A stretch of 64,000 bases of DNA, taken from Selaginella moellendorffii (lineage: Eukaryota; Plantae; Lycopodiophyta). The stretch spans positions 1 through 64,000 of the forward strand of contig NW_003314442.1 in assembly GCF_000143415.4 (NCBI RefSeq), in the 5' to 3' direction. The first letter of the stretch is position 1. Each line of letters opens with the position of its first letter. A model generated the notes under the pieces. That model did not search any database, was not told where the DNA came from, and saw nothing but the letters and a program-made list of their open reading frames with translations. Below are positions 3,926 through 9,000 of the stretch, piece after piece. Both the position numbers and the translations under genes were made by a program.

Positions 3926-5088
3926 ATGGAGGCGGTCGTGGCGGATCTTCACAACCAGCTCGGAAAGAAGAGCAGCTTCGAGAGCGCGGCCACGGCGCTG
4001 GCATCTCTCTTCCGCGATCGCTATGACGGGGCCACGGCGGCGGAGAAGAGAGCGGTGAGTGAGCGATCTGATTCCTGTGAGAGGATTGATTTGAGCCAGG
4101 GAGAGTGTGTAGATGTACGCAGCTGCTTGCCGAGCGGGCTCGCTCCTTCAGAGCCGCTACACTGGAAAAGGATTCTGGATTGCTGGGCAGATACTGTTTG
4201 AGGAAGCTGGAGATGCCATCACAGACCCGCAAGAGCAGGAGAACATGATGAACTGGCTCACTAAGGCTCACGAGTTTCTCCACGAGGACGAAGACAATTC
4301 ACCGCCACAGCAGCAAGCGCAAGCAGGACCAAGTGCGTATGCAAATTTTTCTTTTAGTCTTTGTCTCCAACCGCCTCGTGAACAGGCTCACCATTTTTGT
4401 TCGAGGGACAATTGACTGTCGATCCGGAGCCACGACCTCCGCTATGGCTTCTCGCTCCGACTACGTATCATTACGGACCGGCACAGCTTGATGGTGAAGG
4501 CGAACATGACGACGAAGAGCTGGAGGATTATGTGCAGTCACTCACAGCGCTGGAGAACTTTGTGATTGAACAGGCAGTTCGGCTAAGCCAGGTAACGTGT
4601 TAGATGCCACCAAACTTCACAGCGATTCGAGTTATCTCTTCTTCTGTGCCTTGCAGGAGCAGGATACTCAGAAAGGACCACCTCCAGCTTCCAAGGACGA
4701 AGTCGCGAAGCTTTCCATCGTGCGCGTGACCGAGGAAGTGCTGAAGGGCCTGGGCGATGGAACCGAGTGTGCAGTTTGCAGAGAAGTTTTGGTGGTCGGC
4801 GATGAGATGCAAGAGATGCCTTGCAAACACTACTTCCATCCTCTCTGTCTCAAGCCATGGCTGGTACGTGTGCTGTTTTTTTTTTTTTTTTTCTGGATTC
4901 GTGTCTTGGCTGAGAAACGTTATATGACGTTCGCGCAGGAGGAGCACAACTCGTGCCCGGTTTGCAGGTACGAGATGCGCACCGACGACCACGAGTACGA
5001 GAGCAGAAAGGAGCGCGAAGCGGAAGCCGAAGCCGAGAGGAAAGGTGCGGCCAATGCACTTCCGGGTCTCGACTTCATGTACGTATAA
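3926..5088 (+). CDS. AIP2: RING-H2 E3 ubiquitin ligase, AIP2 (ABI3-interacting protein 2)-like; multi-exon
   Basis: N-terminal LGKKSSFE...SRYTGKGFW, then FLFEGQLTVDPEP, PPPASK, the C3H2C3 RING CAVC...MPCKHYFH..C..PWL..HNSCPVCR, and C-terminal ERKGAANA...FMYV. Canonical GT-AG introns. Confidence 0.9.
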
Positions 5089-5160
5089 GTAGATTAAAAG
5101 CGATTGTGGAACAACTTTTGTTCCCCTAGGCAGTACGTACTAATAAAACAGGATAGATCT

Positions 5161-5823
5161 TCACCGCCATTTCGATCCAACCAGGCTGAAATCCTGGCTA
5201 TCTTCGTAGAGAATGCTTCTGATGGTCATGGCGAATGCTGCTGCCGCAGAAACGCCGCCGGTGTTTGTCACGGTTTGGACGTATGGTGGAGCAGGCCCGA
5301 TTGCAGCCTAAGAAAGACAGAAAGAACAAGCTTGATCGAGTTTCCGAAGTACCTCAACAGCTTGTAGTTTTCTGAGGTACCACTCTCGCTCGAACAAAAC
5401 ACCAAGGTAAGATTTATCCAGCTCGTTTTCTGCCTCACCTGTAAGCAAGAAACGTCTCTGGTTCTCAAGAACTAGCCGAGGCGAGGTCTTACGGATCATA
5501 GAGTGGACTTCCAGTAGTCGCCGGAGATGCATGATGGGTTTCTTTAAGAGAGCCTTGCTCTCGACACTGATAACCTCGAGTGTGTGTTACTTTCCCAAGA
5601 TCTAATAGCAAGAAACACATTTTTGAGAGACCTGCTGGACTGGGAGTCTATGTCTTGAAAAATCTCTCGCAAGTTCTCCCACACGTCAGTGCTGGTGCTC
5701 TCCGAGTTTTGCGTTCCATCGTTGTCCAGAGAAAGAGCTCCGCCTGGAGAAAACATGAGAAAAAGATGGCAACACTATCTCCATACCAGCGTCAGAAGCT
5801 GCATTGTGGAGCTCTTCTTCCAT
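5161..5823 (-). CDS. Small (~150 aa) five-exon protein with EB1 C-terminal (EBH)-like motif and no CH domain
   Basis: Manual splicing of four GT-AG introns gives an open frame MEEELHNAASDAGG...HSMIREAENELDKSYLGVLFEREWYLRKLQAVE...AMTIRSILYEDSQDFSLVGSKWR*. Confidence 0.65.
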
Positions 5824-6012
5824 GGAAGCAAGACAGAAAAGAAAGAAAACTAAAGACCTAGATTCCAAAATATACCCGCAGTTCAAGTTATTTACAAGCA
5901 AGCTATGTACAATATGTACGTGAAAAAAGAGAGCAATCACTTGACACTTACACCGTTGGTCATCTCACTCTCACTCCTCGTTCACTACTCTCGCTTCTAC
6001 CATTCTACAAAA

Positions 6013-9000
6013 CTAATAAGCCAGTGACGTGAAGAGACCAACACCCCTGTTTATCCAGTGTGATTGATCTTCCTTGGAAGGCAGCTCTATATACATGACA
6101 AAGTTTGTCGAGTGACCAGTAGTCGATAGTGTTCCTGAAAAACGAGAGAGATTCTTGTGAACTTAAATGTTTTAACTCGCAAGGAGGGAGTGATCTGCGT
6201 ACCTGCGCGAACCAGTGTCTTGTAAACCGGGCACTCGTAGATGCCTTCCGTGGGAGCCTTCCTAAACTGGAGAGGCTTGAGCCACACCACCGGGAGCTCC
6301 GTGTACAACTCCTTGGGCCTGGATTCGTCCAGGACGTGCTGCTCGTAGTTCCACCGGCATCCCTCGAGGTATAGGCCCCGGATGTAGCAGCCATCGTCCG
6401 GGGGCTGCTTGATGGTGTCGTAAGTTCTGTCGTCAATGATCACGAAGTCGAAGCCCACGGTATCGATGGGGTATCTGTACTTTCTCGCAAAGTTTTGCAG
6501 TGTTCCCGTCAGGAAGGCCTGGGCGTGTTTGAGAGATGAGTTTAGCTTGCTGCTCGGAGACGTAAAGAAAAACAGGAGAAGCAAACCTGAGGGAAGAAAA
6601 ATCCTGAAATCCAAAACACGGGAGGAGCACCGTTCCTTATCCATGTACTGATGAAATTTGTTCGCTCCAATAGATCAGCCACCCAAGCCGAAAGAGGTTT
6701 CAACGAAGGATAAGCCTTACCAGCCCACATTTCAGGCACCTGCAAATATGCTCCAAAGGTTTTAACAATCTATACTACGAAACGGAAGAACGAATGACAA
6801 GAAAGTTTACCTGGTTATTGAAGATGCTAGAGCACACCATCTCAAGTTCCATGGACATGACCACGAGACCTATGAGAGCCTTGAGAGCGTCATTGAGCGA
6901 TGTCTTCATGACCGAGAGAAGACCATTGTACCGAATGCACTCCTGCGTCAGCACGGTGTTCATACTCTCGCTATACATGGTGGGATACAACTGCAGGACC
7001 GCCTCCACGTCAAACACCGAAGGCAACTTCTCCAGAATGTCACGGCACGACTTCTCGATCATCTCTTCCCGGGACAAGCCCCCTCCTCCGGAGCTCTGCT
7101 CCCTTGGTTGCAGCATGAGCACGGTGTTGAAGAGGTCGTACGACTCGTTCTGGTCGCAAGTGATGTCCGCGTTCTCGTGAAGTCCAAAGATTTCTGGCTT
7201 TGGTGCAAGTGGTAGCTCTTTGATGTAAGCCAGGAACTGATTCACGTTAGAGGCTTCTGGAACTCGAAATACACCCGATGGACTGAAGAAGTATTGAGAT
7301 GTTTCTACCACCTGAGAGAAAAAGTGGAAATAGTGAGCGTAGAACCAAGGGAAAAACACCATGTGCCGTACATTGGGATTGATAAAAATCAAAAGAAGAT
7401 TGTTGATGAGCCTCCTGTCTTTGTCGTCTGTAACTCGTCCTCCATAGTTGATTTCTCCACACAAGAATCGAATGACCTGCAAGCAATGCGGGTAGTTAGA
7501 TTCGGATCTTTGCTCGCAGCAGTACAAACCTTGTATGGGATTTCCTGATAGTCGTTCAAAAACATTCTGATCTGAGTTTGGCATACACTCAAATCTCCGT
7601 CAGTAAACTCGTACCGGATGTTCCAGCCAAGTGGTCCGAACTTGCGTCTCTCTTGAATGACAGCATGGAACAAGCAGCTTGCAAAAATAAGCTTCTTCCA
7701 CTCGTCTGGTTTTGCGCAGTCGCTCAAGATCTTGTCGGTGAAACGCAAGTAGGACCTCGCAAGATTGGATTTCAATCCCTTGGGTGGTTCCAGCGTCATC
7801 TTTACACCATTTTGAAGGATAGAAACAGGAAAGTCTGGACTGGGCATGCTTGTCAGCCACAGCCGGAAATCCTTGTGAACCTACAAAGGAATTCTTCCTT
7901 GTAATTCACAAAAAAAAAATAAAAAAATCCAATCTTGTACCTTCTCTGGATCAATATTGTCCACAATACGCTCCAAAGCTGGCATCCATGACTGGGACAA
8001 GTGGCAATTCTGTAAGCACACCCACATTCCTCGTTCCATACCAAGCTCTAGCAACTTTTCTGCCTTGGGACCTTGTCCTTGGCCCAAAGACACCTGGTGA
8101 TAGTCAAACGGTTAAGAACAAGTTCTAACGAGCTCGTGTACGTACCTTTTCGAACTTCTTGGTAAATCTCAGTTCATCAGCAAGCTTCAGTAGATCTGCC
8201 ATAGGATCTGCACCTGCTGAGAGAACGAATATAAGCGGTGATGAGTTGGATCCATCCTTATAACATGCACCCAGATCAAATGCTGGCGGCTCTATGAATC
8301 GTTGTCCCATTGTTGCAGCAACGAAGTCTTGAACACCGAGAAGAGCCTTGTCTACCCGAAGGCATCGAAGTATCAGCAACTTTTGGAGCATGCTGAGCTT
8401 TGTGTCCCATTCACCAGCCAGGGGCTCTCGATGAGCTTCCGGGCTGTCAAAATACTTTCTATAGTGTCCTACGTTCTCGGCCACGTGTTTATCAAGGCCC
8501 TGGTAGTTTGGAAGCTTGCTAAGGTTGGCAATTTCAATCCAGGACTGAAAGGTAGGCCACCGTAACGTTCAGTAGGGTGAGAAAAAAACAGGAAGAACCA
8601 GATGTACCTTGTCAGTAAGCCATGAAGGTGCTGGATTTGGACTGAGTGCACTTGAACTGGCAGCACCAGCCAGTAGAAACCGCCACTCGGCGGGATCAAC
8701 TTCTTTCCGTCCCTGTAGATATATGTCAGAAAGAGTTCAACAAGAACATAAATTCCATGCCTGCATAATCTTGATGCAAAGAAGGAACGAAAACATGAGC
8801 TTGTGCTTTTCGAAAAGCGACCGACAGATATTCACGTACAAGGAATACGTGAAGTATTCGTTTAAATTCTCAATTCGCTTGTCAATGATGGAAGCTTGCG
8901 CAGCACTTTCAATAGCTCGACCAAATAAGTTGATGAACCAAGCAAGACTGTACTGATACATGGGATCCACAATGGCCAAGTCCGAAATACAGAAAAATAG

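Follow-up and report, generated by a model that had tools for sequence, protein, structure and literature searches.

The protein network at microtubule plus ends is centred on the RP/EB family. In these proteins, the CH domain binds growing microtubule ends, the EEY/F tail is a ligand of CAP-Gly domains, and the combination of a CH head with an EBH tail is regarded as fixed. Dominant negatives are known in the form of EB1-C fragments used in experiments and of plant microProteins of the LITTLE ZIPPER type. We know of no described class of CH-less EB paralogues that is dedicated to the flagellar microtubule apparatus. The locus that we compare with these systems encodes an annotated, uncharacterised protein of Selaginella moellendorffii, which is a member of a small, undescribed EBH-only family; our literature search found no publication that names gene identifiers of this family.

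The window, i.e., the whole stretch of 64,000 nucleotides that was analysed, carries the gene on its minus strand at positions 5823-5161. Exon-wise translation of five exons yields a product of 151 aa, completed by three split codons (G, S, R). Exons, introns and protein domains are located as follows:

5787..5823, minus strand: exon 1, ATG at 5823-5821, residues 1-12 and the first base of G13, peptide MEEELHNAASDA
5744..5786, minus strand: intron 1, 43 nt, GT..AG, joint 5742->5786 in run X1
5632..5743, minus strand: exon 2, residues 13-50, peptide GALSLDNDGTQNSESTSTDVWENLREIFQDIDSQSS
5567..5631, minus strand: intron 2, 65 nt, GT..AG, joint 5566->5632 in runs X1, X5, and X6
5493..5566, minus strand: exon 3, residues 50-75, peptide VESKALLKKPIMHLRRLLEVHSMI
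5439..5492, minus strand: intron 3, 54 nt, GT..AG, stop-free and in frame, joint 5436->5491 in runs X1, X5, and X6
5353..5438, minus strand: exon 4, residues 75-103, peptide EAENELDKSYLGVLFEREWYLRKLQAVE
5308..5352, minus strand: intron 4, 45 nt, GT..AG, joint 5306->5352 in run X1
5161..5307, minus strand: exon 5, residues 104-151 and stop at 5163-5161, peptide AAIGPAPPYVQTVTNTGGVSAAAAFAMTIRSILYEDSQDFSLVGSKWR followed by the stop
5410..5705, minus strand: family-specific N-terminal helix-loop-helix module, residues 26-84, split by introns 2 and 3
5182..5409, minus strand: EBH-like domain as delimited by the family profile against PDB, residues 85-145, split by intron 4

The exons divide the protein along its length. 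The conserved N-terminal module has its first helix in exon 2 (VWENLREIFQDID), and the long helix starts in exon 3 with LLKKPIMHLRRLLEVHSMIR (helix 54-106 of the AF2 model). Exon 4 provides the coiled coil and the first half of the EBH domain (LGVLFEREWYLRKLQAVE), where positions 4-18 of Pfam EB1 match and Bim1 and Mal3 are aligned. Just past ..AVE, the EBH domain is interrupted by intron 4, a position that is common to other land plants; three fragments from the family (P0021-P0023) continue into intron sequence at this same point. The order in exon 5 is a variable loop, the second EBH helix (IRSILYEDSQDF), and the conserved tail SLVGSKWR.

Transcript evidence comes from contigs of four public runs, one from each of four studies, which we mapped on positions 4400-8400. 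The RNA nature of these runs was a guess; they do contain transcripts, since spliced joints are present. All four junctions occur as CT..AC joints in the contigs. Run X1 has every one of them and extends to position 5812 in exon 1, introns 2 and 3 are additionally joined in runs X5 and X6, and altogether three studies supply junction evidence. The preliminary description of this DNA had joined a frame of about 150 aa across four short canonical introns and had named spliced reads as the check. With four GT..AG introns, 151 aa, and each junction recovered in transcript contigs, this gene model is borne out, and the two motifs quoted in its favour, EREWYLRKLQAVE and IRSILYEDSQDF, are encoded by exon 4 and exon 5. 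Contrary to the label 'hidden' used there, NCBI already annotates three isoforms of the gene as uncharacterized protein.

We reached the NCBI gene, LOC112341900, by a word search with a stop-free stretch that comprises most of exon 3, intron 3, exon 4, and intron 4. Its isoform X2 (151 aa) has identical junctions and begins with the exon 1 peptide MEEELHNAASDA; the exon translations align to it without gaps, and S17P and K149R are the sole differences. NCBI isoform X2 probably stems from the other haplotype. All full-length analyses were run on this isoform X2 product (P0001), which is thus two residues off the product of the window. Isoform X1 (169 aa, P0033) keeps intron 3 and gains 18 residues, and isoform X3 (128 aa) results from aberrant splicing. 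In run X7, contigs over introns 3 and 4 are unspliced (intron 3: contig 5427-5586). The 18 residues added by retention of intron 3 fall within the long helix, and the run X7 contig is likewise unspliced there; this could mean either a regulated isoform whose coiled-coil register is broken or pre-mRNA.

We hold with high confidence that the C-terminal half of the protein is homologous to the EBH domain, a judgement that draws on sequence profiles. Significance is reached at the level of the family profile, not by the Selaginella sequence alone. The latter scores 13.6 bits against Pfam EB1 (PF03271) over profile positions 4-40 of a model of 41 positions, whose gathering score is 27. Orthologues score 15-25 bits, with Klebsormidium (24.4) and Chlorokybus (24.5) as the best; Pfam EB1 matches 10 of 17 members, the best at E 6.4e-6, over nearly the entire 41-position model, and for the Ceratopteris member a PF03271 match was already precomputed. 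A profile of 17 family sequences, compared with all PDB sequences, finds Bim1 (E 7.8e-7) and Mal3 (1e-6), followed by EBH chains of human EB1 and EB3. When the profile is built from the C-terminal halves of 20 sequences, yeast Bim1 (E 2.7e-7) and Mal3 (8e-7) lead again, and 26 of the 29 PDB matches at E<=1 are EB-family chains. Both EBH helices are covered by these profile alignments, and the ILY...GF motif, which lies outside the coiled coil, is among the aligned parts. The nearest neighbours under a protein language model, taken as a lead only, are clusters with the EB1 C-terminal motif. Exon-wise Pfam scans, which gave a 13-bit EB1 match on exon 4 alone, were dismissed as evidence, the exons being too short. 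Thus, the preliminary description was right to place an EB1 C-terminus after a coiled coil as far as the family profile is concerned, which matches EBH chains, while the Selaginella sequence by itself stays below the Pfam gathering score.

The predicted structure agrees in outline. The AF2 models are monomers; that of the Selaginella protein has a mean pLDDT of 77.7, exceeding 90 at residues 61-110, and its helices 24-46, 54-106, and 124-137 arrange as an N-terminal helix followed by long helix, loop, and short helix. Fitting the Mal3 EBH domain, with an identity of about 20%, onto residues 66-140 of the model gives 1.6 A for 64 of 67 residues (Z 5.0), a test that is non-discriminating for a hairpin. 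Foldseek searches with the whole and the C-terminal model returned E values of 1.5 or worse, and in the VIA wide and Atlas structure searches generic long helices dominate the matches.

It is very improbable that the likeness to EB1 arose by chance from coiled-coil composition and that the protein is an unrelated small coiled-coil protein. Such an origin would explain why single-sequence scores lie below threshold, and helical proteins do draw spurious matches, e.g., HMG-CoA reductase and apolipophorin; yet the matches of the family profile are nearly all EB-family despite the thousands of coiled coils in PDB, the aligned ILY..GF helix is not a coiled coil, and the reverse Pfam matches span the full model in those 10 of 17 members. 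Separately, chain q of PDB 9qzc, a 380-aa 'centrosomal protein, putative' in the A-C linker of the Tetrahymena centriole, matches the first EBH helix at E ~1e-3 (LLAENSSYLEKLRKTEEILEE). The match does not include the ILY helix and is probably coiled-coil similarity.

In human EB1, the cavity that buries the Ile-Pro of SxIP is formed by L221, L246, F216', Y217', F218, K220', R222, E225, Y247, and A248 (PMC5686072). Mapped through the HMMER alignment to human EB1 chimeras, these correspond, in the same order, to L99, L136, W94, Y95, L96, K98, Q100, E103, Y137, and E138 of the Selaginella protein, i.e., six residues are identical, two are conservatively replaced (F216W, F218L), and two are changed (R222Q, A248E). 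Counted over 20 family members, L99, L136, and E103 are each kept in all 20, K98 in 19, L96 in 18, W94 in 16, Y137 in 15, and Y95 in 13. Position 100 is R in 11 members and Q in seven, position 138 is E in 12 and A in three, and the prasinophyte members lose the cavity tyrosines. The best-conserved columns of the family are core and cavity residues of EB1, which fits a retained peptide-binding groove, possibly of altered specificity. Given the changed positions, SxIP binding may be altered or lost.

The remainder of the protein differs from EB1. At its N-terminus, all members share a module of the pattern VWENLxxIFxDxDA...L[KR]xPxxxLRxLLxxH, which matches no Pfam family. Its conservation equals that of the EBH part and extends from Selaginella as far as Pyramimonas and Rhodelphis. 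This conserved module, missed by the preliminary description, makes the predicted protein more than a bare EB1 tail. A profile of the module against PDB finds calbindin D9k (E 0.014) and CaBP1 (0.046), both broken up into stretches of about 9-12 bits, and CML18 (0.18), and the single-sequence PDB search also pointed to calmodulin. As a criterion for an EF-hand, we used a loop of 12 residues, D-x-[DNS]-x-[DNS]-G-x-[ILV]-x-x-x-E, flanked by two helices, together with a significant profile match. The module was rejected as an EF-hand: the PDB matches are weak, Pfam gives no EF-hand match, and the loop has neither the canonical Gly6 nor the hydrophobic residue 8 nor Glu12. CDK2AP1/2, suggested for the N-terminal half by a lone single-sequence match to CDK2AP2 (2m1l, E 0.37), was discarded as well, being reproduced neither by three profiles nor by Pfam.

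An unlikely reading of these data is an EBH-derived scaffold without EB1-type ligands, whose hairpin only dimerises and whose activity resides in the N-terminal module, microtubules not necessarily being involved. The module, conserved as strongly as the EBH part, would then carry the function, possibly as a degenerate EF-hand-like fold in view of the calbindin (E 0.014) and CaBP1 (0.046) matches. However, these matches are non-significant and the putative loop is non-canonical. Similarly, the changes at the R222 and A248 positions in Selaginella, the loss of Tyr247 in several algal members, and the missing EEY tail would suit a hairpin that has abandoned its ligands, while the family-invariant columns are exactly the cavity and core residues of EB1, and a range confined to flagellates fits a cytoskeletal role.

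Upstream of the module, an acidic motif rich in Y and D/E is seen at the extreme N-terminus of some members, reading RYEPNDLNSSSEND in ferns and YDA[AS]RY[DN]... in algae. Its carriers are three fern sequences (P0005, P0034, P0032), Pyramimonas (P0030), Pterosperma (P0018), and Mesostigma (P0014). The motif is common to ferns and prasinophytes; the Selaginella and Diphasiastrum products are without it.

Pfam scans found no CH domain in the three NCBI isoforms or in any full-length relative, as the preliminary description had stated for the N-terminus of the window product. The longer relatives from Pyramimonas (435 aa), Ginkgo (332 aa), and Klebsormidium (220 aa) lack it, too; the Ginkgo member probably has a mis-predicted N-terminus. 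An upstream exon that might supply a CH domain, the alternative raised in the same description, did not emerge: the three NCBI isoforms share one start codon, exon 1 is not joined to upstream sequence in any contig of the four runs, and the poly(A) sites of the preceding dynein gene lie at about 5917-5876. The acidic EEY/F tail is absent from all members. The Selaginella protein ends in ...DFSLVGSKWR, and an F-x-L-[VI]-G-S-[KR]-W end is conserved among the land-plant members.

A small protein that is mostly dimerisation domain and has no CH domain might act as a heterodimerising microprotein. Its EBH domain and coiled coil would pair with a CH-containing EB1, leaving a single-headed, poor tip tracker, and EB1 function would be damped or cargo redirected wherever the protein is expressed, as with the dominant-negative EB1-C fragments. 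EB paralogues heterodimerise, and EBH homology with conserved core residues is in line with such pairing. Against it stand the age of the family and the identity of about 20% to the Mal3 EBH domain. Since, in addition, no canonical EB1 was found by a three-sequence family profile, coiled-coil compatibility is doubtful, and so is heterodimerisation with the canonical EB1 family, given the sequence divergence. Moreover, simple poisoning would leave the conserved N-terminal module without a role. We therefore assign a low probability to this reading, which is nevertheless the chief competitor of the adaptor explanation favoured below.

The distribution of the family was studied by an exhaustive HMMER search of 1.84 billion cluster representatives with the three-sequence profile as query, which gave 28 matches at E<=0.001; canonical EB1 is not among them. 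Family members alone, and again no canonical EB1, were returned by a word search that started from the 332-aa Ginkgo member. In total, the family comprises about 20 clusters, where it has to be considered that small genes often are unannotated and that taxon labels are available for part of the matches only. The named land-plant members belong to the lycophytes Selaginella and Diphasiastrum, the moss Sphagnum, the ferns Ceratopteris and Adiantum, and Ginkgo. Algal members are named from Chara braunii, C. vulgaris, Klebsormidium, Mesostigma, and Chlorokybus and from the prasinophytes Pyramimonas and Pterosperma, and a further member is from Rhodelphis, a flagellate relative of red algae. The other matches are unlabelled environmental contigs, single-exon fragments with intron read-through, and repeat-protein noise; in particular, P0020 (a bacterium), P0025 (a TPR protein), P0026, and P0029 (a fungus) were set aside as multi-stretch repeat or coiled-coil noise.

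All named members are flagellate Archaeplastida, which indirectly supports the proposed link to flagella. No member was found in angiosperms, conifers, or zygnematophytes, though their proteomes are abundant among the 1.84 billion representatives. The comparison of flagellated with non-flagellated plants that the preliminary description had named as a check agrees in part with the link to flagella: every named member is flagellate, but members from Physcomitrium, Marchantia, and Chlamydomonas were not seen in the profile search, and the match to the flagellate lineages is incomplete. Plant axonemal dyneins have the same phyletic range as this family (PMC9237703), as does BLD10 (bioRxiv 10.1101/2021.07.25.453666). 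Judged from its members' sequences and their taxonomic spread, the family is separate from canonical EB1 since before the divergence of streptophytes, prasinophytes, and Rhodelphis. Going by the taxa in which the family occurs, the likely place of function is the flagellar, basal-body, or spline apparatus.

In the window, the small gene directly follows a dynein gene on the same strand:

6013..6133, minus strand: last exon of the upstream dynein from ORF and sequence, stop TAG at 6015-6013, joint 6133->6202
5824..6012, minus strand: spacer of 189 bp between dynein stop and ATG, with dynein 3' UTR, poly(A) sites, and TATA-like TATATTTT

The dynein exon before the last matches Chlamydomonas DHC2 (E 8e-38) and human or other mammalian DNAH1 (~1e-31), which identifies the neighbour as a single-headed inner-arm axonemal dynein heavy chain. 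According to a survey, every land plant with flagellated sperm has a DHC2 orthologue, and DHCs are absent from conifers and angiosperms (PMC9237703). The DHC2/DNAH1-type gene (6013-8400, minus strand) shows low-depth transcription with correct splicing in 4/4 runs, and its introns are short (53-71 nt), as is typical of Selaginella.

The distance from the dynein stop (TAG 6015-6013) to the ATG at 5823 is 189 bp, matching the value of about 190 bp given beforehand. Dynein contigs stop at about 5917, 5895, and 5876; the first of these ends carries a loose T8, which marks a minus-strand poly(A) tail. The dynein mRNA 3' ends sit 50-95 nt ahead of the ATG of the small gene. The TATA-like TATATTTT is at 5874-5867, 51 nt ahead of the ATG; together with the position of the dynein 3' ends, this means that the promoter of the small gene overlaps the dynein 3' UTR. 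Not one contig of the four runs mapped on 4400-8400 bridges the two genes. Within 10 kb of the family members in Diphasiastrum and Klebsormidium, no dynein was found; hence, the adjacency looks incidental to a compact genome. In Diphasiastrum complanatum (CM055103.1), two identical copies at about 16.28 and 16.33 Mb, about 44 kb apart, lie in opposite orientation, and one of them adjoins a retrotransposon integrase fragment. On the other side of the Selaginella gene, a convergent RING-H2 zinc-finger gene is located at 4407-5088 (plus strand; introns 4589-4653 and 4863-4937; stop 5086-5088). The two genes overlap at their 3' ends, since single contigs of runs X1 and X6 span from the last RING-H2 exon into exon 5.

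The explanation that we favour, at about an even chance, is that the protein would be a homodimeric, CH-less adaptor of the SxIP type in the flagellar apparatus. It would consist of the N-terminal helix-loop-helix module, a long helix expected to form a parallel coiled coil, and the divergent EBH domain. On the model of EB1, Bim1, and Mal3, a dimer would form through the long helices of two chains, and the short C-terminal helix would fold back to give a four-helix bundle with a hydrophobic cavity for SxIP-type peptides, such that the dimer presents two SxIP-type grooves. Lacking a CH domain, the protein has no means of its own to recognise microtubule ends. Instead, the N-terminal module would set where the dimer sits, and SxIP-type partners would be held there. 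In flagellate cells, this place would belong to the microtubule apparatus, be it the flagella, the basal bodies, or the spline/multilayered structure. That the chains pair, that they bind such ligands, and where and when the protein acts are inferences.

A wider and more tentative proposal, possible but somewhat short of an even chance, is that of an ancient CH-less EB1 paralogue with its own targeting module, dedicated to the flagellar, basal-body, or spline apparatus of Archaeplastida and lost at each loss of flagella. While spermatozoids or zoospores are formed, its role might be that of a docking hub of the SxIP type that stays in place, or that of a natural antagonist of EB1.

Compared with the RP/EB proteins (EB1/MAPRE1, Bim1, Mal3, and plant EB1a/b/c), the Selaginella protein has the same succession of a C-terminal coiled coil and an EBH hairpin. 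The motifs ER[DE][FW]Y.xKLRxIE and ILY...F are common to both, the SxIP-cavity residues are largely kept in the family, and the variable loop between the EBH helices is long as in Bim1. In contrast to the RP/EB proteins, it has no CH domain, no linker, and no EEY/F tail, and brings its own N-terminal module and an F-x-L-V-G-S-K/R-W end. At 151 aa, the Selaginella protein is also much smaller, and while EB1 is nearly universal in eukaryotes, the family is limited to flagellate Archaeplastida. If a natural, conserved family has held on to the cargo-binding tail, has given up the microtubule-binding head, and carries a different N-terminal module, this would amount to a new use of the EBH/SxIP interaction.

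With the EB1-C fragments and the plant microProteins of the LITTLE ZIPPER type, the protein shares its small size and the fact that it is essentially the dimerisation and partner-binding domain of a larger family. Unlike these, it belongs to a natural, ancient, and independently conserved family with an extra domain. With the plant axonemal dyneins and BLD10, finally, the family has no sequence relationship but shares the phyletic pattern, which reaches from bryophytes to Chlorokybus and leaves out the angiosperms. This common range makes it a tractable candidate for the assembly of the microtubule arrays of plant spermatozoids, i.e., the spline, the multilayered structure, the basal bodies, and the flagella, a poorly understood process.
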